A DNA stretch of 64,000 nucleotides from NCBI GenBank assembly GCA_964187785.1, contig OZ076409.1, forward strand, positions 29,264,001 to 29,328,000. The letters run 5' to 3'. Every line of letters begins with the position of its first letter. Position 1 is the stretch's first letter. Positions 8,223 through 60,345 of the stretch are shown here, piece after piece. Source of the stretch: Amphiscolops sp. MND2022 (Eukaryota). The position numbers were made by a program, and so were the translations under genes. The notes under the pieces are model-generated. The model did no database searches and was not told where the DNA came from. It worked only from the letters and a program-made list of their open reading frames with translations.

Positions 8223-8400
8223 AATGTACATAATGTACATTTGTCATTCTAGACTCTTGATTTGTAAATTTCAGTTCTGTTTCTTGTTTTAGTATTTATA
8301 TAGTTAGTTTCTTTTAAGTCATGGAAGTCAGAGTAGTCCCAGTAAAAAACATGCCTACTTGGGCAATAAAATGAGTAGGGACATAATTTAACATTTCTGA

Positions 8401-11400: not shown

Positions 11401-13578
11401 CATTGGCAGCTATGCCGATGTCGTCCACATATTGGGCACATTGATCGGCTTTGATGACTTTATCGAGGTATTCTCGCATTAAGCTTGAAAAGGCTGATAA
11501 TGCTCTGCTAAGGCCTTGAGCTAGTCTCCTGTAAGCGAAAGTGCGGCTTGCAAAGTTGAACGCAAGCATCTCAATGGACCTTTGGTCCGCCATTGCAAGG
11601 CAATGGAACGCCTGTGAACAGTCAAGTTTACAGAATAATTTCTTGCCTGCCATATGCTGTGCGGCGTCCGCTAAGGTGCTAACTGGATGATTGTTATTTA
11701 TATAGTCATCTGAAATAAGGTTATTGATTTTCCTTAAATCGACTAAAAGTCTCAGTTTCCCATTCGGCTTTTTCTGTGCAAATATGGGACTAGCATATTT
11801 AGAGAATGGCAATGTAGTTATGATGCCATATTTGTGTAAAAGGGCCAGTTCGACGAGGATGTCCTCTTTTAAACTGACTGGAGTAGGTAGACTTTGAATA
11901 TATGCAGGCGAATCGTCCTTAGGAGTTAGTTTGACTGTGAATTCTTCATTCATTCCTATGTCAAATCTGTGTCTGGCGAATATGTCGTGATATTCGACTA
12001 GGAGCGATTAAATCTTTTTGATTTCGTGCTGGTGTAGCATCGAGTCTTTCCACTCAAAGTTGCTGAGGAATTTACGACGTGACTTCTCATCGTTTTGAGG
12101 GTTTAGTTGCTCGGCCTCTTGGAGGTTGCGTAGTTCTTGAAGAATCCGTCGCTGGATAGGAGTGTGGGAATCCTCGTCCCCTGGGTTTTTTGGTGTTGGA
12201 AACCGGTACTGTTCGTATTGATCGTTGTTTCGGTTGGCCTTGAGTACACTACTGACATAGTAGATCGCGTCTTCTTCATTTTCGTGGAGAAGATGCCAAG
12301 TGGACACCGGGTCTATTGGTTTAACGTGTTTCATCTGTTCCGGCGTTAGTACTGAGAAGTTTGCTATGAGTGGACCTCTTTTAAGCTTGTAAGGTTGGTC
12401 TGAGAAATTATTGATATGGACATTAACGGTTCCATTAGTCAATGTGATTATTGCGGCACAAAATGTGATATCGCCCTCCTCATGGAGGAGATCACTGGGT
12501 TGTAACACTTCTGTGACCGTGTTTTCATTGTAGATTTGTGATTTGATTTCTACTAGAGTACGGTCATTGGGTGGTATTGTGACATCGTCCGGGTTAAAAA
12601 TAGGTTCCAAGACGTTAGAGTATTTGTGGTCAGCCGTTTTGAGTTGCATGGAGAAATAGGGGAAATTAAAGATGCCTTGTCGCATGTCCAGGACTGTGTG
12701 ATTCCTTTTAAGGAATATTAGTCCTATGATGGGGCCAGTCTGTTTTTCCATTACTATGAATATTTCATGAAATTCAATATCTCCCACCTCGAACTTGAGT
12801 TCAACAGTGCTCTTTGGGTTTCCAATTGTCCATTTGCGACCATAATTTGAAATGTTGGAGCAGGACCTTCTTTGACAATGGGTTGAGGCGCCAATAGGCG
12901 TATTTTCCTGAGATCTGCTTCCGGAATTGCACTAGATAAGGCTCCAGTGTCTATGAGGCCGTCTATGGTTAGTTCTCCAAAGTCCATCGGGAAATATAGC
13001 ATCCGTTTTTTGTATTTGAGTCCGAGGTTCGTGGATAAGGGTATGTACGCGGGTTCTCCTTCTTTAGTTATTAGGACATGCAGGAAAACTGATTCGTCCA
13101 ATAGGCCTGGTTCGGACTGGTGTCCGTTTGCAATAGCTGGATCCTCTATCTCCTGCTTATTGATGATTTCAGAGTTAGGTTGCCACAATTCGATGAGTGT
13201 CCTTGTAAGCCTGTTATCGAGGACTTCGGGGTCATCCTCGTCGTCTGTTGGTGGGTAATCGTCACATTTGAATAGCAGTTCTCTTTGGTCATAGAGGGAA
13301 TTGTCCCAGTATGGATCAACTCCATTTTCAGGATCAATGTAGTGGGGGTTATAATCTTCGATTTGTTGAAGTGGTCTGAATTGTGTTTCAAAAGCTGTAG
13401 TGTAGTCTATGTCGTAGTATCTGTCTGGGCGGTCGTTATGGACCATTTTGTACGTTTTATTGTAAGCTTTCTCCATCTGTTGCTGCCAGACAACTGATGG
13501 TGTTCCGTTGATGTCACTCTGTGATTGCTTGTAGGCGATGTTAGCTGGGTCCGATATGACATATTGTCGTATCGACAT
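8401..13578 (-). pseudogene. pol: pol of element 1 (protease, dUTPase-like spacer, RT, RNase H, integrase, acidic tail), with several frameshifts and stops
   Basis: LIDTGA (protease); LRLLVDLRKIN and QYVDD (RT); MTDAS and TDNK (RNase H); HGTAH...CEIC, QID, TDKG, KLERTH (integrase); WIGPY (GPY/F). Tail ends NLRPNPNPNFTDEYRY*. Confidence 0.95.
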
Positions 13579-13582
13579 TTGG

Positions 13583-14747
13583 TCAGAAATTTGGAGTCGT
13601 GGCGAAATTAGTTTTTTGAATCAGGTTTTTTTGAATTGGATTGGCCTGATGTAGATGTTGTTGGTTTTTCGTCTTTAGTGCGGGTGTCTTCGTCTTGAGG
13701 GGGCTCCGTATCGTTGGAGTCCTTTCTATTCCGTTTTGAACGAAGGTGGGGCCCTGCACCACGCCAACATTTGTCTGCTGGGTGATTAGTTTTGTAGCAG
13801 GTGGGACATTTTGGATAAGTTGGGCGTTGGGGCTTCTTGCCATTTTTGGCCTCCAATTCCTTCTTCTTTTTCAGTTTTGGTCAATTTTTCCAGAAATGGT
13901 CTTCAACCTTGCAGTATGAGCATTGGTTATTTTGGTTGGTATCAATGCCAGTGGATAATAGGTTTTTCGTTTTGCCTGACGATGACGCCATTGTGGCTAT
14001 GGGTAGGTCGTCAGATTCTTCTAAGGCGTTTATTTCAAGCTCTCTTTCCAAATGTGCCACAATCTCCTCGTAGGTCCCGTTTTCCAGTCGGGCCATATTC
14101 ACGGAACTTTTGAGTTTTGGGGATAATTTAGCAAATAAGAGGCTATCGATCATGCTCTTTGCGTTTTCCCCGAAGGCTTTCTCGGCACCCTGGTTGAGTT
14201 TTTCGAGGAAGTCGGGTAGTTTCATTGTGTTGGGGTCGAAAATGAGTCTGTGCCATTTATGTTTGGCCGCGGCTCGAGACTCGGGTTTAACGTACTTGCG
14301 ACGAAAAATGGCGAGTACGTCTTCCAGTGTTTGAAGGTTTATAGAGTTTATATTTCGGAAAGTTTGCAGGGCTCCTTTTCGGAGCAATGAATGAAAATGG
14401 TTTATTTTCATTTGTTCCGTCATAGCTGGCTGCATCTTTATCATTGTATGAAATAAGTCTTCTAACAATTCAAATTTTTCTGTTTTGCCGTCAAGTGCCA
14501 TGGGGTTCGCAGTGACTGGTCTAATTGTCATCGTCTGTGGTTTGTTCTGGAGATTTACCAGGACATCGGCCAGTCCGTTGATGGAGTCTTGTGGCTGTTC
14601 GGCTGTAACGGGCTCCGCCACTGGTAGAGTTGTATCCAGAGTTGTATCATGCGCGGATTCTTGTCTCTGAAGATCTGGCTGAGAGTGAATTCGTCCTGTG
14701 AGGAATTCAGGAATCGGCTGTTGGAGTTCGTTAGCTCCTGTCACCAT
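13583..14747 (-). pseudogene. gag: Internal gag of element 1 with two CCHC zinc knuckles, frameshifted near 13881
   Basis: Capsid-like region KFELLEDLFHTMIKMQP...; knuckles CSYCKVEDHFWKN(C) and CPTCYKTNHPADKC. Confidence 0.9.
14735..14746 (-). promoter_or_regulatory. Primer-binding site of element 1 (tRNA-Leu-like, one mismatch)
   Basis: TGGTGACAGGAG directly after the LTR CA end; resembles the tRNA-Leu complement TGGTGTCAGGAG as recalled. tRNA identity tentative. Confidence 0.65.
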
Positions 14748-16457
14748 GTAAGGAGTGTTGTCCGTTTGATCCCTCAGATCACAAGCGGACCTTGAGTCCT
14801 TCTTTGTAAATTTCGTATTTGCGTTCTTCCATACATTCCCAATCCCGTCCTCATTTGTGGACGTACACGGCTCAAAGGCAAGTTTTCCACCATGTTTTGT
14901 ATTTCTGGGATAGTTCTCTCACTTATGGCAGAACTAATGGCCCTGCTAATCTGTGATTGCATTAGATCCATCATGGTTTCCATCTCACGTGACATCCTAG
15001 CATTCATTTCTCCAGACAACATGTTAATTGACTCTACTAGTCTGCTTTCTCTAACAGGCTCATTTCTACTATCAATGTCTCTGATCTCATTCTCTTGAGA
15101 TGAATTTTCTCTGTTAGGAAAGGATTGAAAGTCTTGCTGCCTTTCTGGGACATTAATTAGGCTATCTAGTTCTCTCTCTATTGAGTTTGAATTTCCTTCA
15201 CCTGGCATTACGTCCATGTTGCCGTAGTCGGACAACATATCTAATTCTCTCGATTTCCTGGCTTTTGCCTTTTGTCTCCTTGTGGAGGGCATTGAAAATG
15301 ATTATCCAGGAGTAAATACTTGAATTGTTTCTGTGGACAATATCAACTAGGTTTCACAGTGAATCTTGTACAATATGTATAAGAGTAACTGAACAGTAAC
15401 CGTATTATTAAAACAATTGTTCTTTCAGGGTCAGGCTGGGCGTATTTATACCCAAATTACCATGACACTCATAATTTTAACGGTCATGTTACTAAAAATA
15501 ACTTACAAGTTATAAATATAACACGTCACCGCTAAAAATAGCATCGTTACGTCACAAAGTTCACATAAAGGCGGGTAGATCAAAGTGCCTTATTAGGCCG
15601 TGTGACGAATAGTTAATGACACTCATATGTAGCATAATATATGCAAACACTTTTACATGTAGATAGAAATCATGTATAACACAACTGATGAGTAGCTGAA
15701 AAGGACCTATAGTTCCTTTTAACAGCGCAAAGCAACATTACATTTGAACATGTGCATGAAGGCCCTATACGGCTATTGCCCGTTAGGGTTTTCTGATTCA
15801 ATCCCAATCATAACACGGAAAGCAACACTACTTGTTAGCGATATACATGTTTGGTCATTGCATGGTGGGGTTACTTGTGTCTTTCCATCACTAATTAATT
15901 GAGACACCAATTTCATATAATAGGTATACAGCATTTGAATGCTTATTGCGTCAACCTGCCGTGATAGGCCTTATTTACTGTATAGCACCAAGACAATTAG
16001 TACAGTGAGTAGGGACAGCTATGTCACATAGCCGCTTTCGTCCTATTTCTAATTACTGAACATTATTCAAGTACAGCATCAAAGCACAGTAAGGCCGGCA
16101 AAATTAATTGGCCGTATTGGTCCATTCTAAATAGCACTAGCGCAGTTACGTAATAAGTAATAAGATGGTTGTTATAAACTGCACTCTGATTGGCCAATTG
16201 ACCATGGACGGCTTAGCTAGCTATACTGGACAGGCAAACATTTGAACACGTTTCCTTTCTGCCTGTCAGTATAGCTTGCTGTCAAATGTATTTTACATAA
16301 AGAATAATAAAACAATTCACCAATCAACATTACATATTCAAAATAATACTAAATGTTTGAAAGTTTTAGTTTTATAATGGGAGTGTCCCAGGTAAGGCAA
16401 TTGGCCTCGAATGGTCAATTGTATAGACGTTGCCATCGCAGGCGGCAGCCTGCGACA
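14747..16457 (-). repeat. 5' LTR of element 1 (1711 bp)
   Basis: Copy of 825-2551 with a 16-bp deletion between two CTCAA motifs, which frameshifts the LTR-encoded gag part (ORF 14774-15292). Confidence 0.97.
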
Positions 16458-18099: not shown

Positions 18100-18490
18100 C
18101 AAGATACGGTCTTGTTAATCTACGGAGCAAGTAGTCGTTGGTAACGATTCGCAGTACGGAATTCAGGGCGGCGTAAGGTTTGGTCAAGTGAAGGAATCAA
18201 GCAACCGTTACAGCTGTGTGAGTATTTACTACTCCAAGTGACTTGGGGATTTTGCGAAAATAACAACTCCAATGCTAAACGCGAAACGAGACAAAAAGCT
18301 TCCACTTGACACTAAGGTCATACGCAGCATAGAAACTATTAAACGGGTCGTATCGAAAGCGGCATTGTAGATGCCAGACAAGACGAAGCCCTTTGTGCTC
18401 AAAACAGATGCCTCGGGCAACGCAATTGCCGCGGTCCTAACCCAAAACAGTCAGCCAATAGCCTTCTGATCTCAAAAACTTTCGAATCAA
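18100..18490 (+). pseudogene. Short decayed Ty3/Gypsy RT-thumb/RNase H fragment
   Basis: Reads YYSK*LGDFAKITTPML...MPDKTKPFVLKTDASGNAIAAVLTQNSQPIAF. Confidence 0.8.
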
Positions 18491-19339
18491 GTGTTGAATT
18501 GGTCAGAGATCTAAAAAGAAGCATTGTTTGGAATGATTGTTGGATTGGCACAAATGATTGTTTGGAAAAAGTGCTTCAAAATGACACCGAAATAATCGAA
18601 AGTACCGAAATTTTCCACTTTTTGACACTTCAAATGATTCCTTTATTCGAAACTAGAGATGTTTGTCAGGTAGAAACTCCAAAAAAACCGAACAACAACC
18701 CCATTTGCAGCTCGCATTTAAAAAAGTAGTACCTCCATACAAAAACGATTGCTAGCATTGTCACAGACTTTTCAAAAAACCCAAGTGTTTGACGTTTTTA
18801 TGCAGCTTTGTTGTACACCCTCTTCGCAATTTCGTTGTATAGAATAGTTCATATACTCAACAAAGGCTAATCCCGGTATCCAGTATTCGTTTCGAAAGGT
18901 ATCAAAGCATTTTCTTTTCGAGGAATCTGCGTCAGTCGAAAGCCACTCAAAATTGAAAAACATAATTTCTGAGAACTTCGGGCCAGTTTTTGTTCAATTC
19001 AGGAACTGTGTTGGAGAATAAAACTTCCATTGACATTAAAATTGAAACAATGAGCTATTCAAAACTGTACTTGGGAAAAAATAAAACATGGTCCCCGAGT
19101 TTGAGAAATACGGAATCAAAAAATCCGAAATTTCACCTTTATTGATCAAATTTTGGACCTTTTCAGAGTGTTTTCATTGAACTAGAAAATACATTGGCTC
19201 AAATGCGAAGAACGTAGCTACCAGTACGTAAAAAATCTCGAAAAAAATGTACTTTTGCAAAAAAAAATTAATACAATAAAAAATTCTCGAAAAAGAAAAG
19301 GATCGTTTTTCTTTCAACTTTTTATTTTAAAAAAATTAT

Positions 19340-22674: not shown

Positions 22675-25600
22675 AAAAGCGTCCATTCTATGAGATAAAA
22701 GTGTTGCCTTTGCATTGACAATGGTCCTTATTATGGAGTTTTGACAGCATAATTTATTCAATTTGCATAACTATTGACTCAAATGTACTAGAGACTTGAA
22801 ATTCAACAAGGCGGATATTATCAACATTAGAATTGACCTGTGTTAAGGAAAATTATTGAAATGTTTGCTATCGGTACTCATTTGAATTGTGTTTTGCAAC
22901 CCTAAGGCATACGTTAAGAACAAGGCATATCTATACTTTTTCTTTCCATGAAGGATTTAGTCCCTTTGTGGGAAAGTTATCACGTACATTCTAAACAAAG
23001 GTGCCAACTTTTGCAGTAATGTTTGGTCAAACATGAAACATTAGCCAGAGAATGCAACTCCTATTACTGGCTGGACTCAACTCATTCTTCTATTTTGTCC
23101 ACTCAATCCTACAAGACTGACTAATGATACACTTCGTGTAAGCTGTCGCCGCCACTCTCGCAACACAGCAAAAGCAACGAACGGCTGATTCCCCGCTCGC
23201 GCAAAGAATAAAAGCAAACCATGCGCACAGTTAATTACGCACTGGGACCGCTGTCCATATTATAAAAGAACAATTTTACAAAATAATAAAAGCGATACAA
23301 AACAGGAAATCAAGGAAAAAGAATGAAAACTAATGCAATGACTATTAAATGTGAGTGATTATTTTTGATCAAAGTTATATTTTCTCTTCCTGCTGCTTTT
23401 TCTGTCGGATATCGAAATTCTTTTGACCAATTCAGGGCACCACTGTTTCAGATATTCAGCGTGCTGGTACATTTCTGAGTCAGAGTCCAATTTGAAACAC
23501 CACGTTTTGAAACTGTCGAAACCTCCCAGTCGAAACTGTGCACTCCAACGTTTCTTCGTCACTCCGGGTAAAAAATTATCAAATAACTGAACAATCAGTT
23601 TCTCATTACTGATATTGCAGCAATCCCATCCCGCTAAAATTGTTGTTGTTCCCATATCAAATGTTAACACGGAATGAGTCGTTAGATGGGGAACGTGAAT
23701 CAAATCCCCTGGACGCTGGACAGCAAATTGAATATACCAGCTGTCTTTTTCTCGCGCGGCGCTCTCTGCATGCGATGAATGAAGTCGAATGGCGTCTGTA
23801 GTGAACGTTCCAGTAAAACAGCCGCGTTTAACGAAGAATAGGAAAGGCACAAATCCTAATCCCGGTCAATAAATACGCGAATCCAGCTACGCGAATCCCT
23901 ACTTCTACGTGACCCGGAGAGAACCACGAACCGCGATAAACAAGAGCGGTACTTTCAGTGACTCGTTGTCGATAAAGCAGGCGGGGTCGATGCAATCATC
24001 GCATAGCACTGTATCAGATAAAGAATTGGGAAAAGCTAACGGTTTCGTATTCATATTTAGAACAGGATGACGAACATCTGTAATACCTCGTTCCCACGAT
24101 ACTCGTCCTAGTTCCAGGTAATTCCTTAACACACCTCGGAGACACGTCATGGAAGAAGGTAGAAAACATGCATCTTCAGGCGAAATTGCACTTAGGTCAA
24201 CATTGGAAAGCGAAGGAACACGTGATCAAAATGGGTGGATAATTTTAGTGTCAATTTCAATTTTTTCTACAGGTAAAAGCGGAAGTAAATTCGAATACTC
24301 AATCAAGACTGGACTGCTACAAGTCTCTAATGACACAGAAGTTGAAGGGGCACGGTAGGGCAGCTTAGAAACTGAATTGTCCATAGCACCAAACAATGTA
24401 TGTGAGCTAGTATATGTGAGTAGAGTAACGGTAATTATGACACACTTCAGCACGGATGACTACAGAGTGTGTGTCACATGCACATGCTATCTACGAGGAT
24501 AATTGGAAAGCAGCGGACCTGCGCGTTCTCCAAATTGAGGATGTGGATTTTTTTGTGTGTTAGCCAGGGAACGAACTATAACCGCCGCCAGCATGAAGTA
24601 ACGTCAGTTTTTGCGACTGCAGAACAAAATTTTGTAATGACTTTTGTACTACTACTATGTATTAAATTTTGACTTTCTAACTTCCCCCGAATGCACAATT
24701 TTCAACATATCGACGTGAAATGCGAGGCAGACACTCATCAAAGGTAGTTCTATCGATCGTTAGAGCCACTTTTGCTAATATATGAGAAAAGTCAACTATA
24801 AACTACTTTTTAGAGTTTATAAGTATCCTCCCATACCATATTTTCACATAATGGAATAAAGTTCACTGCAATACCTTGTAGTACAATTGCAACGACATGC
24901 AAGAAAGAGAATCATGACTTTCAGGGGAGCCTGATAGAAATTTCCTAAAAAAGGAAAGGTCAAACGAGGCGCTTGAATGAGAATTAATCACTCCACCTAA
25001 CCGGTGATGCTGCGAACTATAAACGACACGACGCTTGATGTTGAAATTGCAAATACGAGTAGTTGTTCGCACGCAAGCGTCGTCGGTTGATTAACTGATG
25101 AAGAAGGGATCTACAACGAAAGAAAACGCTGCTCACGTGATAACCCGAGTCATGAAAAGGAATTTTGAAGTAACGAGGGACTGATAGGCGGCGAGGGACC
25201 GACACGAATAAAAAAGAAACAGTTGTCGCGAAATGACTGGCTACGACTGAGACCGGTGAAATGAGGGACGCGAAAAAAAACTAAACGGGACAAGTGGAAC
25301 GAAACAGGCTAGAGTGTAGGCGCCTGAAACAAATCGCAGAGTGATATTGTGGAAATCTTGTACTTTTCTGACGACAACTTGCATCTTTTCTACAGATATC
25401 TGTTTTTGATACCAGTAAAACCTTATACTAAGTGTGAGTAAAGTGTTGTTTTCTAAACGCAAATTTATTATACCTACTGTTACTTCACCTACTTGTATAC
25501 CATTATTTACGTTGCAATTGAATTTTTCGACATTATAGTTTTAATTCGCGATCGGAGTTCTGTGAGGCCAATTTCAAGCCATTCGAGGGAACACTGAGGC

Positions 25601-25737
25601 ATATATTTTGCAGAAGAGTCCACCAAAAACCCTTTGATTAATTTTGTGGAGAGAATCGCTCTTTACCTCGAGAAAGACAAATTCCCAGGGTTGGTCAAAC
25701 GAAAGACGACCCATTCCGCTCACAGTGAAAGTCTACA
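22675..25737 (+). repeat. 5' LTR of element 2 (at least 3.06 kb; left end abuts the RLE fragment)
   Basis: Aligns by eye to 34867-38642 at roughly 85-90% identity; ends gaaagtctaca followed by gTGG PBS. Confidence 0.85.
23359..24384 (-). pseudogene. JmjC-domain 2OG/Fe(II) dioxygenase, antisense in the 5' LTR of element 2 (about 340 aa, disrupted)
   Basis: PLLFIAVRG..PGHVEVG..AGFAYLLTGI(R/K)I gives the HxE iron ligands (23903-23911) and the G-x-K strand. VQRPGDLIHVPHLTTHSVLT matches the JmjC QxPG(D/E)xx(F/Y)VPxxxxHxVxN motif, with the distal His about 78 codons after HxE. C-terminal RKRK. Confidence 0.75.
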
Positions 25738-25738
25738 G

Positions 25739-25756
25739 TGGCGCTCCTGGGTGGGC
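25739..25756 (+). promoter_or_regulatory. Primer-binding site of element 2 (tRNA-Asn)
   Basis: TGGCGCTCCTGGGTGGGC matches 16 of 18 nt of the tRNA-Asn 3' complement TGGCGTCCCTGGGTGGGC as recalled. Confidence 0.8.
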
Positions 25757-25768
25757 AATCTCAGTTTA

Positions 25769-27258
25769 ATGACGAATGAAAACACCCCATTACCTGAGGG
25801 TCTCTTATCCATTCCTGCGAATTTGAATCTTTCGCGCGTCACAGATCGACGTCACCGAAGAAACTCCTATCCAAATTTAGCTTCCTCGGCAGACTTCTGC
25901 CCAGCAGTTGAAGAACAGTTCACTAGGCTCTTTACAACACGGGGTGGTACTGACTTAAAGAATATCTCCATGGATAATCTGGAACGTGAGAATAGAGTTC
26001 GTGAACAACGCATGCGAGAATTGAGGAAACAGATTGAAGCAATGTCTGTGCAACTAGAAACACTGCATGCCTTGAAAGATGAATCCACCGAAAACTCTGT
26101 ACCTCAAAGAAAAGAAAAACCAGTTTTCAGCGGGGTTCCAGTCAGACCGGGACGGTTTCCGTCAAAAGGACTCAACCGTTGGGGTGTATGGGTGAAACAT
26201 TTCAAGTGTGTCGCACAAGCAAATAGCTGGACGAATATCCAGAGCATACAAGCGATCCCGGCGTTCCTTAAAGGCTGGGCCTTGGAAGATTATGGCACTG
26301 TCACAGCCAAAATCACCGACTACCTTCGAGGTTACTCTACACCGGCGTTGGAGGCCTTGCTGACCTTTTTGACACCTGGGATGCAACAACACTGTGATGA
26401 GAAAATCTTGCGAAGTGAATTTCGCTTCTTGGCAAAACTCGCAGACGAAAGTATTCAAGACTTTGCTCGATGGATCCGGATAGCAGCAGAGGGGGCCTTC
26501 GAGTCACTCCCAGATGAAGCCAGGACCATTCACATGAAGGAACAGCCCCTCGATGGTCTGCAGGACCATGAAATACAAACGAAGATGCTGGAGGACGAGA
26601 CGGATCAGGACTTCACAGAAATTGTTCAGAGAGCGCAGCGATTAGATGCCATAAAGATAACAGCAGCTAAGCATGATATGAAACGAAAAATGGCAGAGCA
26701 GCCAAAACCAAATGTCCGATTTCTGCACAGTCAGTCTTCTGAACGGCAAGACGTAACATATACAGATTCGCAAGCCATATGTCTTGTGGCGTTTTCAAGT
26801 GACCCGGTAGAAGATTTTTCTAACCTAAAAATTTCTGTGCAGACTGTTAGCAATCGACTCGACAAACTACATCAAACAATCTGTGGGCAGAACGTTCATC
26901 TTAGTCACTCTGTAGCACATGCGGTGGCATCTACCTTGAAGCCATCCAACGAAGCAATGATATCAGCAGTCAGCAGTTTGTCCGACACTCTGGGGCGGGC
27001 AGTAGTCGACTTATCCAGCAAAATTGCCTTTTGGAATGGGGGCGCGCCGCAGAGTCTGGGTGCGGGCGACCATCGGCAGCAGATGACTAGCTAGAGACAT
27101 GGAAGCCGAAACGCCGACGAACAACATCCAGGTAGTATACCACAGTCCAAGCGGGTGAGTGGAAATCTTCCTTTTTCCGAAGCCGAATGCTACTAATGTA
27201 GGAAAAAATGCCGCTTTGCTAGGGACTGTCCGCAACGAAATCAAAATCATTTAAACTA
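25769..27258 (+). pseudogene. gag: gag of element 2, with a decayed CCHC knuckle at about 27188-27230
   Basis: Long ORF with WGVWVKHFKCVAQANSW...AIPAFLKGWAL capsid-like motif and a coiled coil; CY*CRKKCRFARDC follows after a frameshift. Confidence 0.85.
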
Positions 27259-27259
27259 G

Positions 27260-30200
27260 TTTCGGCTGAGGCGACGAAAAACTGGTCGACCCCAGTCAAA
27301 ACTCCCATAAAAACGTTTCCGAGACCTCTTCCGAATCGTAAAGTTATGACCGAGGTGAAAAATTTTTGGAGCGCTGGAGGTTTCAAAGACGACTCATCGC
27401 TAAACCCCGGATCCGTTGAAATTTTTGAAAAAACTTCTGATAGCCAATAGTATTTGAAAAAGCATCAACTGGACAAGAGAACACGCTCGCTGCAGGCAAT
27501 GCAGGCGGTACTAGAGGAACAGCGGGCTAATGGGTCCGCATCACAATTGAAAATATGAAGTGCTGGGCAAAAATAGCGACAGGCGCAAGTCGTAGCGTTA
27601 TGAGTGAGTCTCTGTCGAAATTGATTGGCAACCCTATGCGTCGCGACGATAATGATTTGACAGACCAATTGGGAACAAAATGCTTGTTCAAGGAGTTATG
27701 CACGCCGAAGTACTGTTAGGCGGCTCTCTTAAAACTAAGAACGAATTTTTGATAGTTTCTGGACTCTCACCTGACTCATTTTTGGGTCTCCGTTTCTTGG
27801 TAGAGTATAATTGTGTGGTCGACACCATGCAAAAACAGCACGTCGTCAATTGCTCGTCTGAAACGTGCAAGCTAGACATGAAAAAAACTGATCGGAGAGA
27901 CTCTGTCGAGGTAGTAGTGTTTACTGAGTCTATTCACAAATCGTTAGCAATTATTGAAAACAAAAAAACAACCTGGTAGGGTCGAAAACTTTGATGAAAA
28001 TTGGGTTGACCAGACTGCCGGTGTTCAAAGGGTTTCTAACGACTTACCAGCACTAAGTCACGCTGAGTCACTTGAGGAAAATGAACCCCGTGACGAAGAT
28101 TCTACCATTGAGTATTCATTAAAAGACCATGAGTTGGACCATGACGGATGTTTGATTATGGACGAGTAGACCTCAAAACATGGTCAAAAGTCCTCTGAGC
28201 CCAACTTTAGGGAAGAAGTGGGGGAGATTTTGAATTTAACTGCTCCGCGACTGACTAAACAGAGTACCAGAGGAAAACTGATGAGACTAGTCGAGAGATT
28301 TCTTGACGCTTTCGCGCTAGAAAAATACCATTTAGGATGCACAACCCCGGCTGAGCTTAAAATTCAAACTGGTGAAAGCCGTCCAATAAAAAAGCTGCTC
28401 ACAAAGTGGCCTCCGCCAAAATCATCGAGATTAGAAAAGAACCAGAATAAATGCTAGAAAAAGGGGTAATTGTACCATGTGAAAGTCCTTATAGTTCCCA
28501 CATCGTGATGGTCGGTATAAAGGGTGGTTCGAACCGAATGTGCATAAAATTCTGAGCACTGAACGAAGTAACGGTAAAAGATGCTTATCCAATTTCTCGA
28601 ATTGAACTGAGTCTGGATACCTTAGAGGGGGCTTCTGTTTTTTCATCATTATATCTAGCGTCTGGTTACTGGCAAGTTCAAAAAGCACCAAGTGACCGTC
28701 ACAAAACAGCCGTGTATCTCCAGATGGAGGGCTCTATGAGTTTGTCGAAATGCCTTTCGGCATCTGTAACGCGCCAGCACCATTCCGAAGGTTGATGGAC
28801 AACCAGGTTGATAAACGCTGACAGCATGACATTCAGGATGATCCAGAAGTTGCAAGAGTTTAATTTTACAATCGTGGATCGTCCAGGAAACAAACATGTC
28901 AACGCTGACGGACTTTCCAGACGCGAAGAAGACATTCCGGAATGGCAAAAAGAAGCGAAAGAAGCTCTAAGAGGCCAGACGCCAGAAGTCCTCCCACTGG
29001 AACTTGCTCTGGAGGAATCAGAAAGGAAATTAGCGAACACCTGCAACGTAGTCCGGACGAGAGACGCAAACCATCAAGGAGGATATTTAACATCTCAAAT
29101 AGGGAGGATATTGGATTGTCAAGGCGCTGTTGCCCTCTGTGTACCTCCCGACCTTTAAACAGAAGACACCGTGACCTCGTTGTTCCGAGTGAAATTCCCA
29201 ACTCTCCTTTCCATTCCTCCATCGAAAAGAGAGGTAGGCAATATTATGGTGTTTTCTCATCCTGTACAGGCACGGTTTGCGTTTTACCTGTTAACGAAAT
29301 ATCAACATAGCGAAGCCTTGAAACAACGAATGGTTTTCTCCTGTCTGGAAAAATTGAAATGACATACGAGAATTATGGGGGTGCCAGTCGTACACATTGC
29401 CAGCCCGAATTTGGGACGAGGTCCGAAGAAAAGAAAATATTCGAACAATCCGTTGTTCAAGTTTTCCGTGCTAGCAATCTGAACGTCAATATTGTCGTCA
29501 ACGATGAAACAGCGTTACACCAAGACAAGCTGAACGTGACGACTACCGCAACTCAAGCAGTAGACGTTGACTGCCAATTTTCCTGGAAAAGAAACAAAGC
29601 TAAGATCGAAGACTATCAGCTGAAAGACCACTCATTCGGACTGCTTTTGAAACAACTGGAACATCTGAGTTCTCCGTTTGAACCGAGGTACAATAACCTT
29701 GGCGCTAATCAGATCAGACGTGAAGAAGCACTGAAGTACGGTGTGGAGTTTGTTGGCTTTAGGAGTCAAGGGGAGCAGCTCGGCATTAGTAATGGAGTGT
29801 TGCATCGAAAATGGAAACCAAAGTATAGCCATCCTGAGTTTTGGCAGGTTGTTGTACCAAAGGCGCTACGACAAGTACTTCTACAACACCTTCACTGTTC
29901 TGAGGTAAGTGAAGAACACTTTGTAGTGGAGAAGACACTACTCAGGATCAAGCAATGGTTTCGGTGGCCTACAGTGGATCGAACGCGGAAAAAACCATTC
30001 TTGCGTGTGGCCCTTGTGCAGCGAAAGCTACTGGAGGCAAACAGAGAAAAGCTAATTAACACAGTTTTGCTGTGACGTCCAGATTTTCCGTTATCGCACC
30101 GGATAATTTGGGCCCGGTCACGACCGAAGGCAGCTCGAAAGCCAAACACACACTGGTGAGGACGGATATGTTTACAAAGTATGTGGTAACTACATCCGTG

Positions 30201-31503
30201 ATCAACACAGTGTCCCCGACTCTAGCGCAAGCGATTGTGGAAACATGAATCTTCCGTTTCGGGGTAACAGACACCTTGCACGCCGACCATGGTACTAACA
30301 TCAATAGGCTGTTGATCAAAGAGCTGTGTAAGCTTCTCAAAAGTGACAAATCGCGCACCACTGCCTATCACCCAGAAGGTAACAGACATGTCGAAATATT
30401 CAACAGGGTCCTTGTGGAAACCACTTCGAAGTACTGTGCCAGGAATCCCCGTGACTGGGATACAGTTCTTCCATTCATTACGTTCGTGTATAACACTTCT
30501 GTTCATCGAACTACAGGGGCGACCCCCTTCACTCCTACCTAGGGCCAAGAATGTCAGTAACCAATCGACTTGTTCTATCCGAAACCACCAAAAGAAAGAG
30601 ACAGCGTACAATTTATCGAGTGGTTAGACACCACATTCCGTGAGATTCAATTTTATGTCCGATAAACATTGGGGATTATCAGAGAAACGTGCCAAAGATT
30701 ACTATCACCGGAGAGTCTATGGTGACCCCTTTAAATCAGGGGACCTAGTATGGCTTTTCTCTCCTGACTAAGCAAAGTCGAGAAAAATTTTTCTACCATG
30801 AGAAGAACCCTTTAAGGCGCTGGACCATGTGAATTAAGTGAAATACAAAGTTGCAAACATTGGCTGCCCTGAGAGATGGCAGCTAGTCCATTTCATTCGG
30901 TTAAAACCATTCCATGCGTCCATTGAGAAACGGCAGTCACAACGAGTAAAAAAACAAATCAGCGTTCCAGTTGACGTTGAACTTCAGACTGAGGACGAAT
31001 TTTGTGAAGATGCATGGTACCAACCCATGCATCCAGCTCTAATTTCGCCCGAAGCAAGCCCTTCATATCGAACAGGCGAAGACCAGCGAATTAATTCCCT
31101 CTCAATCGCAAATACAGCCGAAATTGCGTTACCTAACGACAATGAGTCAACCTCCAATCCGTTTAGTGGAGAGTCCGCCCCCTTCTCCTAATCGCGTTCT
31201 CTTCGAACCAGTGAAACGAGCCAATTAGATGAGACAAACGAGGTTGCTCAAGATGCAATTGATGGGGTGTCCGCTGAGCATTCGCAGCACTGCGGAGAGT
31301 ATCACATTCATCAGCCGATGGATATCGAAATTCCTGAAGAGGACGAAACCGATGTACTCTTTGCTCCCGAATACGAAGAGATTGACGAGTCAGTGGTGAC
31401 AACGAATGCTCCGCCTCAGGACAACAACACCGTTCAACGATCACAACGCACACACAAACCTCCGACACGATTCGGACTCGACGAGTTTGTGCTGTCTAAA
31501 TAG
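27260..31503 (+). pseudogene. pol: Decayed pol of element 2; RT core and most of RNase H deleted at about 28800
   Basis: RT N-part (KDAYPISRI...GYWQVQK...MPFGICNAPAPFRRLMD) jumps to the RNase H end (MIQKLQEFNFTIVDRPGNKHVNADGLSRR). Integrase motifs LHCSEVSEEHF, HADHGTN, TTAYHPEGNRHVE. Confidence 0.88.
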
Positions 31504-31792
31504 TATTGTTCATGAACATATCAGGTGAGGAGCCCTGATTGGTCTGATAAACAAGACTCCTTGACAATTTCTCCGACGCAATCTGATTTATAGCGTGAGT
31601 CACGACACTCGTCGCCAAATCAAAATTGCGAACGCAGCCGCTACCTAAGTGAAAACAAACAAAATCAGTTGAAAGATAACTGATTCAAAACTGGTCGACA
31701 TCGTTTCAGTAACTTAAAGAAATCTTAATATCCTTTTTCTTCGATGATTTTAAATAAAAGGAGAAAAAAAACAAAAAACAACAAACATCTCC

Positions 31793-33809
31793 ATGAAAAT
31801 TACTTGGGTTTGGTTTTTGTGCTGTTTTGTTATTGCTACATCTGACAATGAAGAAGAAACCGAAGTAGACCCCTGGGACTTCCGTGGGGAAGAGAAGTTC
31901 AATTGTTACGCGTCATGCCAATTGAACTCATGCGATTGCTGGTGCAGCTTTCACGTCCGAACCAACTGTGACCTTGATGAGTATAACTAAGACCGTCTGG
32001 ACATATATCTTGTTCCCTTAACCTCCGGACTTGGAAGAAAAGGTCTTGTAGGGAAGCAGAAATCCAACAATTGATGGAGAAAGGTATTTTTGAAAGTCTG
32101 GGTGAAGTTTTTACAAGTCAGAAATGGTTTTTCGAAGAACTTAAGTCTGTCAAGGAAAGTATCACCGTATTTTTGAATCAAACAGTGAAAAGAATACCCG
32201 AAGTTAAAACGGACCGCTATCGCCGATGGGTAGGTACGCTAGCGCTAGCAGCTGCAGCATTAGGAGGGGAACTGTCAAGAATATTCTTGCGTCCGGTAAC
32301 TGCGGTAACTGACGAAATTCCTTGTTTTTTTGGACAGTATGGTCCTGTTTGGATCTCTCTGTCGATCTGAACAACAAAAACTTATTAAAAAACTAGCAGG
32401 ACAAGTAAGAAAGCGAGTAAAAAAACTGCAAGACGAAGTGAAAAGACTTAACGAAGACGACTTAGACACACTGCTCGTTCGCCCTAATAAAAACCTAGGC
32501 AATTGGAGAAGCCCGTCGTTAGGTTCGGAACTGGTTGCTAATTACGAGCTCTTGAACATAACAATGAAACGAATGATCAACGAAATTGAAACTATTTACA
32601 CTCAAAGTCTTTGTAGTTTCCGCCAACGGGACAAATTGCTGCGCCAAAGGTTCCGGTATACACTGATAATGAATGATGTAACATCGAATTATCGCCGCAT
32701 CGTTGCAGAGCTTGACCAGCGGCGAATTTCATTAGCGACATTGAAATCCCTCTTGATTGATGCGATGTCTTCGCTAGGTCACGGTTACATCCCAATATTT
32801 TTACTACCTCCGGAAAATTTTGTTAAAATTTTGGATGAAGTAGACAAAGGTGTTTTCACAGAAGCTATTCCTCGATTACATTTAGCAGCGTATTATACTT
32901 TTGAGCTGGTTAAGGACGCATACGTTTCGGAAAATACCCTATATCTTTTAATCGAGGTTCCTTTGTATGCGACTAATGGTTTCATAGAGTTTTTAGAGCT
33001 ACTGCGATTTCTCAACCAATTAAAGGTACTCAAAGGGCTACTGTCTACAAAGTGGAGAAAGCACACCTACTTGTGTCGTGGGAGAAGTCGAACTTTGCCG
33101 AAGTTCTCGAAGAGCAGCTCAGCACCCATTGCCGCGGGTCGCAACGCCTCAGACTCTGCAAGCAGCCTTTTGCAACCAGTCGTTCTCAGAAGACAACTTG
33201 CCTGACCGGTTTATATTTCAACTTACCTTCAACAGTCTTGAAGTTCTGCCCTCAGAAAGTACCACTTCCCCAGCACCATCAAGCCCTTTACATGTTTGAC
33301 TCTACTTACCTTTTGACCTCAGCTAAAGGTGATTTCCTCATGCAAATGATGGCGCCCCAAGGCGATGAAGGTAGGCAAGGATGACAAAGCTGTCTGGTCC
33401 ACAAACCGTGTAACGGCTGCATACAGTTGCCGAATAAAGGACTCTTCACTCCAGATCCGCTTGCTTGTGGTCCCGTGAGCCAGCAGGTAGTGCAAATTTT
33501 ACCGACATCATTGCTACAACCTTTGTTTGAAAGACTAGAAGAAATCAAGGAAACCATTCCTGAGCAAATCATAGCGGAGATCCACCAGCGTCTACTAGGG
33601 CATCTGAAAAGAACCTCGCGCCTCGCGGGGTTTCCGGACCGGGCCAGAACAGACACTATGCTGATGACAGTGTTACACCCATTTGTGGAAGAAGTTAAAA
33701 GCGAACACAAGCGGGGGTCCTCAAGCAAACAACTCTTATTTTCCTCTTTGTTGTGGTAATCACTACTATCATGATAGTTTATGTGTGTGCTGCAAGACAA
33801 CCAGAATAG
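31793..33809 (+). pseudogene. env: env-like class I fusion glycoprotein (baculovirus F / errantivirus Env type), frameshifted
   Basis: Signal peptide MKITWVWFLCCFVIATS; Cys-rich N-terminus; furin-like RYRR (32215-32226) followed by the hydrophobic peptide WVGTLALAAAALGG; heptad-rich helices; GYIPIFLLPP and LLIEVPL; Cys-rich C-half; TM segment LIFLFVVVITTIMIVYVC at about 33735-33788. Confidence 0.8.
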
Positions 33810-34135
33810 TTACACTCCTCAGAAAGCTGTATCGCCAAAAAAAACGAAACTCCTACAACGCCTGCAGACAATGTGGACGACAACATCTACTCCAGTTTGA
33901 AGCCAAAAGAAACCCGAAGAACGTACATTCCCTTGTTGGCTACAACATCTGCAACTCCAGCCCAGTAAACAAAAAAGTCCTTTTAGAGTTTTTTAAAGGT
34001 ATTTTCAAGAATATGGTTTTTTTAACTGTCGGTAGTGAATAAAACGAATGATTGTTTTTTAACGGACGTTTGAGGCTTTTCGAGAATTTTTGTCAGAAAA
34101 AAACATTTCTAATGTTCTGGCATTAACAGATACAA

Positions 34136-34671
34136 CATGTTGCCAGTCCCTTTTCAAATGTTGCGTCAGAGAATCAACACAGCAGTCCCAAATAACCTCG
34201 ACAGTGTAATGGTGAATGGGCCGTTTGCCAATTGGATCATACTACCCATAAGATTGCAGCTGGATAGCCTGGGCACTCGGTTCACCTTACACCTTGCACG
34301 CTCCCACTAATACCAATTGCATAGAGGTTCACATCGAGTTCCTGAATATTACAGAAGGCATTTGGTACCCAAGACAATGGCTAATAAGACGCCACAGTTG
34401 TTTCATGTTCTACATGCTAATGGAAGCAGTACTCTCTGCAGCTCTGACAACCCCAGATAGGGCTTCACTGATGGTGGAGTTTTGCCGATACTTGTGCCTT
34501 GCCCTACCCCATGCCCCCATGCAGCCACACTTTGATCCTTATGGTCAACAATTTCCCTTGTACCAACTACTGATGCGACACAATAACCCTGCGGTGATCC
34601 GGCCCACACCACTCTACCCCGTGAACTTCAGCTGCAACACAACTTCCAACACTGAAGCTTCCCAGCCTTAG
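34136..34671 (+). pseudogene. Unknown accessory ORF (about 178 aa, one frameshift) between env and the 3' LTR
   Basis: MLPVPFQMLRQRINTAVPNN... joins ORF 34294-34671 through one frameshift; no motif recognised. Confidence 0.35.
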
Positions 34672-35567
34672 GTTTGATAATTCCAATAGGCTTCGAGAGT
34701 TTTTCTTGTCTTTTGCTGTTTATTTTTTTTCATATGATTCATGTTACAAAAGCTGTTCTAGTCACTACTCAGAGAGTAGTTGAGTCCAGTAGGTGCGAGT
34801 GTGAAAAAGCGAGCGACTAGTGCGATAATTGATAAAAGTTAGCGAGGCGCAAATATTACGTAACTGAAAAGCGTCCATACTATGAGATAAAAGCGTTGCC
34901 TTTGCATTGACAATTGTTCTTATTATGCATTTATGACATCATAATTTATTCAATTCGCCTAATTTTTTACTCAAATGTACTAAAGACTTGTAATTTGGTA
35001 GTTAACAATTCAACAATGCTGATTTTATCAACATTAGAAATGAGCTGTTTCAAGGAAAATTATTGAAATGTTTGCTATCGGTACTCATTCGAATTGTGTT
35101 TTGCAACACTAAGGCATACGTCAAGAACGAAGCATATCTATACTTTTTCTTTCCATGAAGGATTTAGTCCCTGCGTGGGGAAGATATCCTGTACATTCTA
35201 AACGAAGGTGCCAACTTTTGCTGTAATGTTTGATCAAACATGTAATATTAGCCTGAGACTGCAACTCCTCTTACTGACTGGACTCAACTCATTTTTTCTA
35301 TTTTGAACGCTCAATCACACAAGAATGACTAATAATTTACTTGGTGTAAGCCGTCGCCGCCACTCTCGCAACACAGCAAAAGCAACGAACGGCTGATTCC
35401 CCGCTCGGGCAATGAAAGAAAGCAAACCGTGCGCATTTTTACTTACGCACGAGGACCGCTGTCCGAATTATAAAAGCACAATTTTAAAAAATAATAAAAG
35501 CGATACAAAACAGGAAACAAAGGAAAGTGAATGAAAACTAATGCAATGACTATTAAAATGTGATTGA

Positions 35568-36603
35568 TTATTTTTGATCAAAATTATACTTTCTCTTCCT
35601 GTTTTTTCTGTCGGATAATGAAATGTTTTTGACCAAGTTAGGGCACCACTTTTTCAGATATTCAGAGTGCTGGTACATTTCTGAGTCAGAGTCCATTTTA
35701 AAGCACCACTTTTCGAAACTGTCGAAACCTCCCAGTCGGAACTGTGCACTCCAACGTTCCTTCGTCACTCCGGGTAAAAAATTATCAATTAACTGAACAT
35801 TCAGTTTCTCATTACTGATATTGCAGCAATCCCATCCTGCTGAAATTGTTGTTGTTCCCATATCATATGTTAACACGGAATGAGTCGTTAAATGGGGGAC
35901 GTGAATCAAATCCCCTGGACGCTGGACAGCAAATTGAATATACAAGCTGTCTCTTTCTCGCGCGGCGCTCTCTGCATGCGATGAATGAAGTCGAGCGGCG
36001 TCTGTAGTGAACGTTCCAGTAAAACAGCCGCGTTTAACGAAGAATAGGAAAGGCACAAATCTTAATTCCGGTCAATAAATACGCGAATCCAGCTACGCGA
36101 ATCCAGCTACGCGAATCCCTACTTCTACGTGACCCGGAGAGAACAACGAACCGCGTTAAACAAGAGCGGTACTTTCAGTGACTCGCTGGCGATAAAGCAG
36201 GCGGGGTTGATGCAATCATCGTATAGGACTGTATCAGATAAAGAATTGGGAAAATCTAACGGTTTCATATTCATATTTAGAACAGGATGACCACATCTAT
36301 AATAACTCGTTCCCACGATACTCGTCCTAGCTCCAGGTAATTCCTTAACACACCTCGGAGACACGTGATAGAAGAAGGTAGAAAACATGCATCTTTAGGC
36401 GAAATTGCACTTAGGTAAACATTCGAAAGCGAAGGAACACGTGACCAAAGTGGGTGGGTAATTTTAGTGTCACTTTCAATATTTTTTACAGGTAAAAGCG
36501 GAAGAAAATTCGAATACTTATTCTAGACTGGACTGCTACGAGTCTCTAACGACACAGAAGTTGATGGGGCACAGTAGGGCAGCTTAGTAACTGAAATATC
36601 CAT
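35568..36603 (-). pseudogene. JmjC-domain dioxygenase, second copy in the 3' LTR of element 2 (disrupted)
   Basis: Same motifs as the 5' copy: PGHVEVG, LLTGIKI, VQRPGDLIHVPHLTTHSVLT. Extra 14-bp duplication at about 36080-36110. Conserved start MDISVTKLP. Confidence 0.75.
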
Positions 36604-37166
36604 AGCACCAAACAGTGTATGTCAGAAAGTGAAATTGAGTAGAATAACCGAAATTTAGGACATACTTGAGCACGGATGACTACAGAGTGTGTCTACTACC
36701 GATCTACGCGGATAATTGGAAAGCGGCGGACCTGCGCGTTCTCGAAATTAAGGATGTGGATTTTTATTGTGAATTAGCCAGGGAACGAGGGAACGAAATA
36801 CAACCGCCGCCAGCAAGAAGTAATGTCAGTTAATGCGACTGCAGAACAAAATTTTGTATGAATTTTGTACTATTATGTATTAAATTTTGACTTTCTAACT
36901 TCCCATGAATGCACAATTTTCGACATATCGACGTGAAATGCGCGCCAGACACTCATCAAAGGTAGTTCTACCGATAGTTAGAGCCACTTTTGCTAATTTT
37001 GTTTAAAAAGTCGAATAAAAACTAAATTTCAGAGTCTAAAAGTATCCTCCCATGCCATAAATTCACATAATGGAAGAAAATTTACTGCAATACTTTGTAG
37101 TACAACTGCAACGACATGCAAGAAAGAGAATCATGACTTTCACGGTAGCCTGATTGAAATTAAAAG

Positions 37167-38556
37167 GAACGATCGAACGAGGCGCTTGAATGAGAATTGC
37201 TCACTCCACTTAACCGGTGATGCTGCGAACTACAAACGACACGACGCTTGACGTTGAAATTGCAAATACGAGTAGTTGTACGCACGCAAGCTTCGCGCGG
37301 TCGATGAACTGATGTAGAAGGGATTTAAAACAAAAGGAAACGGTGCTCACGTGATAAGCTGAGTCATGAAAAGGAATTTTGAAGTAACGAGGGACTGATA
37401 GGCGGCAAGAGACCGACACGATTAAATAAAACAGTTGTCGCGAAATGACTGCTACGACCGAGACCGGTGAAATGAGGCACGCGAAAAAAACAAACGTGAC
37501 AAGCGGAACGGAACAGACTAGAGAGTAGGCGCCTGAAACAAATCGCAGAGTGATATTGTCGAAATCTTGCAGTTTTGTGACGACAATTTGCATCTTTTCC
37601 ACAGATATCTGTTTTTGATACCAGGAAAGCCTATTACTAAGTGTGAGTATTTTGTTTTTCTCCAAGCGCAATATTATTATACCTACTGTTACTTCACGTA
37701 CTTGTATACCATTATTTACGTTGCAATTGAATCTTTCGAGATTGTAGTTTTACTTCGCAATCGGAGTTCTGTGAGGCCAATTTCAAGCAATTCGATGGAA
37801 CACTGAGGCATAAATTTTGCAAAAGAGTCCACCAAAAACCCTTCATATAATTTTGTGGAGAGAACGATCGAACGAGGCGCTTGAATGAGAATTGCTCACT
37901 CCACTTAACCGGTGATGCTGCGAACTACAAACGACACGACGCTTGACGTTGAAATTGCAAATACGAGTAGTTGTACGCACGCAAGCTTCGCGCGGTCGAT
38001 GAACTGATGTAGAAGGGATTTAAAACAAAAGGAAACGGTGCTCACGTGATAAGCTGAGTCATGAAAAGGAATTTTGAAGTAACGAGGGACTGATAGGCGG
38101 CAAGAGACCGACACGATTAAATAAAACAGTTGTCGCGAAATGACTGCTACGACCGAGACCGGTGAAATGAGGCACGCGAAAAAAACAAACGTGACAAGCG
38201 GAACGGAACAGACTAGAGAGTAGGCGCCTGAAACAAATCGCAGAGTGATATTGTCGAAATCTTGCAGTTTTGTGACGACAATTTGCATCTTTTCCACAGA
38301 TATCTGTTTTTGATACCAGGAAAGCCTATTACTAAGTGTGAGTATTTTGTTTTTCTCCAAGCGCAATATTATTATACCTACTGTTACTTCACGTACTTGT
38401 ATACCATTATTTACGTTGCAATTGAATCTTTCGAGATTGTAGTTTTACTTCGCAATCGGAGTTCTGTGAGGCCAATTTCAAGCAATTCGATGGAACACTG
38501 AGGCATATATTTTGCAAAAGAGTCCACCAAAAACCCTTCATATAATTTTGTGGAGA
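37167..38556. repeat. Near-perfect tandem duplication, 2 x 695 bp, inside the 3' LTR of element 2
   Basis: ORFs 37210-37671 and 37905-38366 are identical at an offset of 695; one base difference seen. Confidence 0.95.
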
Positions 38557-53626: not shown

Positions 53627-53821
53627 GGTTGGCGTGGGGGGATAGTGTGATTGTTTTGATTCATGGTTAAACGTACAAGTAGGTCTGAAAAGGTGAAGGA
53701 AGGAATCAAGCAGCCTAAGGAATATTATTCATGACTATTAGATAGTCATCGTAAAAACAAATAGGAAACTATATAGTTCTGGAATAACGAAAACATGGGA
53801 TAAAAGTTATGAAGGATGGAT

Positions 53822-60128: not shown

Positions 60129-60345
60129 TTCTTGATGACCAGGACAAATTCCGGGGGAAAGGCATCGTTAATGAAGGTGGCTTCAAAGCGTAAGTCCATC
60201 CGGTCTATGTTGATTTTTACTGGGATAGGCGAAAATGCATGATGGGTCAAGGTAACCCCTTTTATTTGCCATTCCTCAGGTTTGGGAAGCATCAACTGTC
60301 GATCTTGTGGGTTCTCAGCTATTTCATCGATCAGTGCATCAACAG

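Follow-up and report, generated by a model that had tools for sequence, protein, structure and literature searches.

Can the long terminal repeat (LTR) of a retroelement house an enzyme gene of its own, read against the direction of the element and kept there by selection? The question is raised by a stretch of 64,000 nucleotides from Amphiscolops sp. MND2022 (assembly GCA_964187785.1, contig OZ076409.1, positions 29,264,001 to 29,328,000 of the forward strand), called the window below, which consists almost entirely of retroelements. A preliminary description of this DNA had placed a JmjC dioxygenase gene, antisense, inside both LTRs of one of them, a Ty3/Gypsy-like element that we call element 2. 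We favor, with a rough probability of 0.62, the reading that this is an LTR-borne antisense JmjC-type gene, kept by selection for the benefit of the element. The features on which the argument turns are the following, in window coordinates, with related loci designated L001 to L011 and their proteins by P numbers.

22675-38642, plus strand: element 2, an old and dead Ty3/Gypsy-like LTR retroelement.
22675-25737, plus strand: 5' LTR of element 2, found by self-BLAST against the 3' LTR, its edges set against the solo LTRs L003 and L010; it ends in CA.
34800-38642, plus strand: 3' LTR of element 2, with TG and CA ends and edges that match the same two solo LTRs.
25739-25756, plus strand: 18-mer resembling a primer-binding site (PBS), which starts one base past the end of the 5' LTR and is identical to an 18-mer in L006.
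23359-24384, minus strand: JmjC-like gene, 5' LTR copy, a pseudogene, placed by frameshift-aware alignment to P0073, P0078 and P0084.
35568-36603, minus strand: JmjC-like gene, 3' LTR copy, a pseudogene, placed by frameshift-aware alignment; an open piece of 162 amino acids (aa) occupies 35568-36056.

Are the repeats truly LTRs? Self-comparison by BLAST pairs 22675-25655/25737 with 34867-37864/38642 at 88.8% identity. The edges are fixed by two solo LTRs on two ENA contigs (L003, 8519-11633; L010, 8058-11155), which are 84-86% identical to the window repeat, start with TG, end with CA and are flanked by a 5-bp target-site duplication (matching at five of five positions in L010 and four of five in L003). 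The LTR unit of element 2 measures about 3.1 kb, starting with TG at 34800 and ending with CA at 38642 or 25737. One might object that the 5' repeat does not start with TG and that no target-site duplication was found around element 2 itself, and hence that the repeats are not LTRs. Comparison with L003 and L010 showed, however, that the first ~67 nt are missing at the outer edge of the 5' LTR, so that it is merely truncated, and the deletion of this edge accounts for both absences. The element in L006, although divergent, has this PBS-like 18-mer without a mismatch, again one base past its 5' LTR, and in this respect the 18-mer behaves much as a primer-binding site would. No tRNA genes were found in the window or the related loci, so no tRNA was matched to it, and Rfam and tRNA scans of the 64-kb window were empty. 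Because of the TG and CA ends, the PBS-like 18-mer, the solo LTRs with target duplications and the position of the direct repeats on either side of gag-pol, we identify the ~3-kb repeats as LTRs of a Ty3/Gypsy-like element on the plus strand, which bears out what the preliminary description had proposed.

What do these LTRs encode? We aligned the intact relatives P0073, P0078 and P0084 to the minus strand of the window, allowing for frameshifts, and found a homologue lying wholly within each LTR; the gene is thus antisense inside both. For the 5' copy the alignments scored 369-409, with bounds of 23380/23413-24384, and residues 1-332 of P0073 fall on 23413-24384 of the minus strand at 33-36% identity. 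The 3' copy has outer bounds of 35616-36558, and residues 16-332 of P0073 fall on 35619-36558, again at 33-36% identity. The 5' copy contains three frameshifts and one in-frame stop, the 3' copy five frameshifts and two in-frame stops, and their longest open pieces have 163 and 162 aa; in the longer one, ~30-45 residues at the start are an out-of-frame translation. The open reading frame (ORF) of about 340 aa first reported for both LTRs was therefore rightly placed and its motifs are real (H-x-E, G-x-K/R, QRPGD...H and a basic C-terminal tail are all encoded in the window copies), but neither copy has an open frame of 340 aa. In one copy of the pair the putative 2-oxoglutarate (2OG)-binding Lys is substituted. 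A chance resemblance is excluded, because the 163-aa piece alone finds 70 relatives in an exhaustive HMMER search (best E=1.5e-32).

The gene was probably already defective when element 2 inserted. The two window copies differ by only two frame-disrupting indels inside the gene, which matches the counts of three and five frameshifts; therefore, both LTRs appear to share the three that are found in the 5' copy. The ratio of nonsynonymous to synonymous substitution rates (dN/dS) between the two open C-terminal pieces is 0.56 over 162 codons, a value compatible with relaxed constraint. In L011, which represents the next lineage after that of the window, the JmjC-like gene has one frameshift. We also considered short introns as the cause of the frame changes and rejected them, since intact relatives are continuous ORFs and P0009, from the window lineage, has the catalytic core in one frame. 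As a separate observation, the LTR pair of element 2 is closer across the JmjC-like gene (93.5%) than elsewhere (89.2%), a pattern that is absent in comparisons with the solo copy L003; gene conversion, uneven mutability and inter-element recombination are possible causes.

Is the gene peculiar to this pair of LTRs? Searches with P0073 (333 aa) and with a profile gave 76 clusters (90% identity) that together represent about 580 distinct sequences, many of them full-length at 328-368 aa (the family ranges from about 328 to 370 aa), and the largest single clusters have 194, 99, 67 and 54 members. Nearly all relatives lie on long-read ENA "metagenome" contigs, which reach 850 kb; Logan assemblies supplied a few more, and none bears a functional name. 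Scanning IMG/VR and JGI metagenomes for a sequence pattern yielded no relatives. Neither the HMMER search with the 163-aa piece nor the profile search found a cellular homologue, and the latter returned only the same element family. A bacterial Ig-like protein (P0063) from the first search proved to be a spurious match. The contig of L001, which has an inverted partial copy at its end (1743-1919), was deposited within a cyanobacterial metagenome-assembled genome (GCA_039823025.1) and is evidently a mis-binned eukaryotic repeat.

Two of the related loci tie the gene to more complete elements. In L006 an intact ORF (10001-10999, plus strand) lies upstream of gag, protease-reverse transcriptase-RNaseH and integrase genes, all on the minus strand, and inside a 5' LTR of 3873 bp (7240-11112), with its stop 113 nt from the outer edge of the LTR. 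The intact ORF of L002 (4074-5075, plus strand) lies just downstream of pol and post-pol ORFs on the minus strand, in a stretch that we identify as the 3' LTR because it is homologous to the 5' LTR of L006. The JmjC-like ORF is thus antisense to gag-pol in L002, in L006 and in the window. At L003, L004, L005, L007, L008 and L009 no gag or pol lies within 10 kb of the JmjC-like copy, and at L010 there is only a distant reverse transcriptase (RT) fragment, ~6 kb away; judging by this, what stands at each of these loci is an LTR, either solo or truncated. Intact ORFs are found in L005, L007 (in two tandem units), L008 and L009, and the broken copies of L003 and L010 are solo LTRs with target-site duplications. 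The gene had been expected to survive in solo LTRs, and copies do persist, sometimes intact, without gag or pol within 10 kb, the two proven solo LTRs (L003 and L010) both holding broken ones. The content of an LTR is present twice in a provirus and once in a solo LTR, and residence there gives the gene two copies per provirus and one per solo LTR.

Some arrangements at these loci are worth recording in their own right. In L007 (2291-9378) two complete LTR units stand in direct tandem with a period of 3539 bp and 99.7% identity, each with an intact 368-aa JmjC-like ORF, and nothing of an element's interior separates the two. The intact ORF of L008 is followed directly downstream by a partial second copy (11084-11656, about residues 143-332). 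L011 contains a p53 DNA-binding-domain exon at 3145-3546 (Pfam P53, E=5.6e-33), 6.5 kb from the JmjC-bearing LTR copy, which suggests that the host there is an animal or closely related to animals.

Taken across loci, at least three lineages besides that of the window carry the gene in their LTRs (27-59% protein identity). It is found in the 5' LTR of L006, in the 3' LTR of L002 and in solo LTRs, and is thus not confined to the window pair. Several lineages of elements have conserved the JmjC-like gene. That element 2 alone once captured a piece of a host gene is contradicted by these further lineages and by the failure to find a cellular homologue, just as the idea that the repeats are not LTRs is contradicted by the LTR features given above. 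We rejected both, and consider them scarcely credible.

Has the gene been kept by selection? Between loci, dN/dS is 0.13 (L002/L001), 0.15 (L006/L004) and 0.18 (L005/L007), and between lineages it is 0.16-0.17. These values, together with the many intact ORFs, contradict a picture of decayed copies evolving at a dN/dS near 1, and they are a clear sign that the JmjC-like protein was under purifying selection while the element lineages multiplied. Whose benefit this selection served is a separate matter. Solo-LTR copies might have been co-opted as a dispersed gene family of the host, so that the low dN/dS would reflect selection at the host level; intact ORFs without gag or pol within 10 kb (L005, L007, L008 and L009) and clusters of up to 194 near-identical sequences would fit this. 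However, hundreds of LTR-bound copies, with decaying ones in every lineage, look like the demography of transposable elements, the gene also accompanies pol frames that are open over the extent of the contigs (L002 and L006), and young solo LTRs are expected to be intact even without selection. We therefore regard co-option by the host as very improbable, and selection for the benefit of the element as the better account.

Is the protein a JmjC oxygenase? Pfam comparisons of the window pieces gave at best a match to JmjC_2 at noise level (E=0.066). Among 48 members of the family, 15 matched JmjC (best 6.9e-4) and 18 matched JmjC_2 (best 4.8e-3), and in P0006, P0028 and P0073 the match to JmjC runs from position 9-13 to position 105 of a model with 114 positions. 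The residues expected to bind Fe(II) and 2OG (H164, E166, K181 and H240 in P0073 numbering) are invariant in 12 intact members. Over 93 sequences, decayed copies included, they are retained in 82-92% of cases (H 61/74, E 65/75, K 66/79, second H 83/90). Counted from the first His, the Lys stands at +17 and the second His at +76; an H-to-K spacing of +17 is that of KDM4-type enzymes.

AlphaFold2 models of P0073 and P0084 were compared with the PDB by Foldseek, and for each the best 50 matches were all JmjC proteins (best E 5e-5 and 4.6e-6, respectively, with a probability of ~1), including KDM7A, PHF2, PHF8, KDM6B/UTX/UTY, KDM2A, JMJD6, FIH and JMJ14. Giant-virus proteins of the cupin/JmjC type were the best matches in a viral structure library. 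In the PDB lists the first places go to KDM6 proteins for P0084 and to KDM7A and PHF2 for P0073; E-values differ less than 10-fold among JmjC subfamilies, KDM6, KDM7, PHF2, JMJD6 and FIH scoring about equally. A specific likeness to KDM6, as noted earlier, is thus not supported, and in the residues before the first His, on which it was based, the window lineage departs from the other members. Pfam detected no PHD, Tudor, JmjN or other extra domains in family members. The protein comprises an N-terminal part of ~160 aa, a putative catalytic domain and a helical C-terminus, and in several lineages the protein ends in a basic tail resembling a nuclear localization signal (NLS). In our judgment the family very probably consists of highly divergent JmjC-type 2-oxoglutarate/Fe(II) oxygenases. 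The JmjC assignment of the preliminary description is supported, though remotely, by sub-threshold Pfam matches, by Foldseek lists made up of JmjC proteins only but drawn from low-confidence models, and by an invariant H-x-E...K...H; no member passes the curated Pfam threshold. Of the four outcomes that the preliminary description named as refuting (no JmjC/cupin match, a gene confined to this pair, no intact copies with dN/dS near 1, repeats that are not LTRs), none refutes it.

What would such a gene do for the element? It would be placed in the U3 (unique 3') part of the LTR and transcribed divergently, away from the element's own promoter, and a poly(A) signal a short way inside the outer edge of the LTR would terminate its transcript. 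The motif AATAAA is present between the stop and the LTR edge in the window, L005, L006 and L007, and absent in L002 and L003. The enzyme would act in the nucleus for the element's benefit, and the basic C-terminal tails in several lineages do suggest a nuclear protein. There, it would remove repressive lysine methylation at element copies, which we rate the most likely activity at somewhat below even odds, or hydroxylate a host or element protein. An anti-silencing role would be plausible. In its most specific form, which we put forward only tentatively, this would mean a Ty3/Gypsy clade, probably of animals, that encodes a histone lysine demethylase in U3 as a divergently expressed counter-silencing factor, with two copies per provirus and with solo LTRs as potential stand-alone genes, hundreds of which would be spread through the host genome. 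The repeats are not depleted in CpG (observed/expected 0.8-1.3), which would fit, as circumstantial evidence, a host that silences through histones and small RNA and not through DNA methylation.

The same anatomy could also serve a different chemistry. The protein may be a JmjC-only hydroxylase of proteins, or another oxygenase with a non-histone substrate, comparable to FIH, JMJD6 or the ribosomal oxygenases, that modifies a host or element protein and leaves chromatin marks alone. A small JmjC-only protein without reader domains would suit this role; the highest TM-scores (0.22-0.36) are those of JMJD6, FIH also ranks near the top, and weak matches to JmjC_2, the ribosomal-oxygenase type, are as frequent as those to JmjC. 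On the other hand, the best E-values go to the demethylases KDM6, KDM7, PHF2 and KDM2, the NLS-like tails fit a nuclear role, and the models are too poor for ranking subfamilies. On balance we find a hydroxylase of this kind rather unlikely, but it is the strongest competitor of the demethylase reading.

Several observations weigh against the reading of an LTR-borne, selected JmjC-type gene, and they concern first the protein itself. No Pfam match reaches the curated threshold (24 and 22 bits for PF02373 and PF08007, respectively), PDB sequence searches with the profile and with P0073 gave nothing meaningful, an NCBIfam search gave no match, and the profile search found no bridge to cellular JmjC proteins. 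Both AlphaFold2 models are of low confidence (predicted local distance difference test, pLDDT, of 52), and the Foldseek TM-scores are only 0.17-0.36. If these failures are given full weight, the protein may not be a JmjC protein at all, its H-x-E...H pattern being coincidental and the product an unrelated accessory protein or an inert cupin-like fold. This would leave unexplained why two independent models each return 50 JmjC proteins out of 50, why a third of the members give sub-threshold JmjC matches, which in those examined span nearly the whole model, and why four catalytic-type residues with an H-to-K spacing of +17 are among the invariant columns. We hold such a coincidence to be improbable. 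Other points concern the mechanism and the selection. The putative enzyme may be a demethylase or a hydroxylase, and antisense transcription, U3 placement and poly(A) use are inferred from the DNA. The AATAAA motif, present in most lineages and missing from some, could be there by chance and is weak evidence of such a signal. All four copies of the window lineage (5' LTR, 3' LTR, L003 and L010) are broken. Finally, nucleotide conservation is as high in the non-coding parts of the LTR as in the ORF, and a comparison of the ORF with the rest of the LTR revealed no consistent difference. The antisense JmjC-type gene kept for the element's benefit nonetheless remains the reading that we favor, at the probability given at the outset.

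The remainder of element 2 comprises the following features.

25634-27094, plus strand: gag open frame, 486 aa as listed, in which the part homologous to L006 gag is 25949-26689.
27534-31494, plus strand: pol (protease-RT-RNaseH-integrase), broken, placed by tblastn and frameshift-aware alignment to the pol proteins of L002 and L006.
31814-34620, plus strand: post-pol region, broken, the candidate "env", colinear with four ORFs of L002.
37167-38559, plus strand: two tandem copies of a 695-bp segment in the 3' LTR, 99.9% identical.

The aligned part of gag has neither frameshift nor stop and is 37% identical to L006 gag. Pol has six frameshifts, 11 in-frame stops and two large deletions. A direct Pfam scan of the internal frames of element 2 matched Integrase_H2C2 only; the order protease, RT, RNaseH, integrase was seen by Pfam in the pol of L006 and L002, with both of which element 2 is colinear. 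In the post-pol region, the part resembling the ORF o365 of L002 has three frameshifts and two stops and that resembling o211 one frameshift and one stop; the remainder is recognisable only in part, and the whole has at least four frameshifts and three stops. Element 2 had been described as env-bearing: post-pol ORFs colinear with those of L002 are indeed present, but Pfam found no recognisable envelope domain in them, the L002 ORFs giving weak coiled-coil-type matches and one hydrophobic segment. The 211-aa-type ORF (window 32945-33561 against L002 6580-7215) is the best-conserved protein, at 63% identity compared with 41% for pol, and no known domain was found in it. Element 2 is dead, since both JmjC-like copies, pol and the post-pol region are broken. 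The tandem duplication of the 695-bp segment is far younger than the LTR pair (~11% divergence), and the matching stretch of the L002 LTR (2612-3333) has tandem repeats as well.

The rest of the window holds other retroelements. Element 1 is a younger LTR element (825-16457, minus strand) with an intact RT-RNaseH ORF and LTRs at 825-2551 and 14747-16457 that are 98% identical. Between its integrase and its 3' LTR lies an ATG-initiated antisense ORF of 528 aa (4360-5946, plus strand), for which neither Pfam nor a PDB sequence search gave a match; this ORF may be a further accessory gene in antisense orientation. Both LTRs of element 1 contain a sense ATG-initiated ORF of 172-189 aa (817-1386 and 14774-15292, minus strand), also without a Pfam match. 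A third retroelement-like region (48472-63909, minus strand) includes an RT-like stretch (58135-59040) that is 36% identical to L002 pol, and perfectly identical tandem duplications (60297-60936 with 62805-63444, and 62405-62799 with 63445-63839); no JmjC-like sequence is present in it. An isolated RT fragment lies at 18149-18577.

How does the gene compare with known systems? With cellular JmjC oxygenases (KDM6/UTX-UTY-JMJD3, KDM7/PHF8/PHF2, KDM2, JMJD6 and FIH) the LTR family shares the H-x-E...K...H residues and sub-threshold Pfam matches, and they are the only PDB proteins among the 50 best Foldseek matches of two of its members. It differs from them in an identity below 20%, in passing no curated threshold, in a short His-to-His spacing (76 residues), in the absence of JmjN, PHD, Tudor and zinc domains, and in being a gene of a retroelement LTR and not of the cell. 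Mobile elements are known to carry chromatin cargo, such as DNA methyltransferases (DNMTs) in retrotransposons, TET/JBP in fungal KDZ transposons and VANC in VANDAL elements. These are likewise element-encoded factors that could act on host silencing marks, but they belong to other enzyme classes and lie in the internal coding region, not antisense in an LTR. Genes within LTRs also have precedents: the superantigen of mouse mammary tumor virus (MMTV) is encoded in U3, and the antisense gene HBZ of human T-cell leukemia virus type 1 (HTLV-1) is transcribed from the 3' LTR. The likeness lies in coding within a long U3 (MMTV) or antisense expression from an LTR (HBZ), and in a gene duplicated or retained with the LTR; the differences are that these are vertebrate retroviruses with unrelated, non-enzymatic proteins, whereas here the whole gene is antisense, wholly within the LTR, codes for a putative oxygenase and is known from sequence alone. 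Long plant Ty3/Gypsy elements (Tat/Ogre, RIRE2 and Grande types) have antisense accessory ORFs too, between pol and the 3' LTR and with no enzymatic fold known to have been assigned; unlike the JmjC-like gene, these lie outside the LTR.

Literature searches found no LTR-resident or retrotransposon-encoded JmjC gene, in agreement with the preliminary description, which knew of none. The nearest documented case that we found is that of the giant viruses endogenised in Amoebidium, whose many-copy, JmjC-only KDM4-like genes have been read as interacting with host chromatin (PMC11244446). There, too, a parasite of the genome bears many copies of a reduced enzyme that has JmjC as its only domain, but the carrier is a giant DNA virus and the genes are clear KDM4 paralogues found with the Pfam model (PMC11244446), whereas the LTR family is far more divergent and lies inside the terminal repeat of an LTR retroelement.

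The finding therefore combines known ideas, element-borne chromatin cargo and an LTR-embedded accessory gene, and is no categorically new system; the combination, a selected enzyme gene wholly antisense inside a retrotransposon LTR, is one that we did not find described. Should the enzyme act on chromatin, the retroelement would encode its own counter-measure against histone-based silencing. Solo LTRs, usually seen as only regulatory debris, would also be possible protein-coding genes, and the long LTRs of poorly studied animal genomes deserve annotation at the level of their ORFs.

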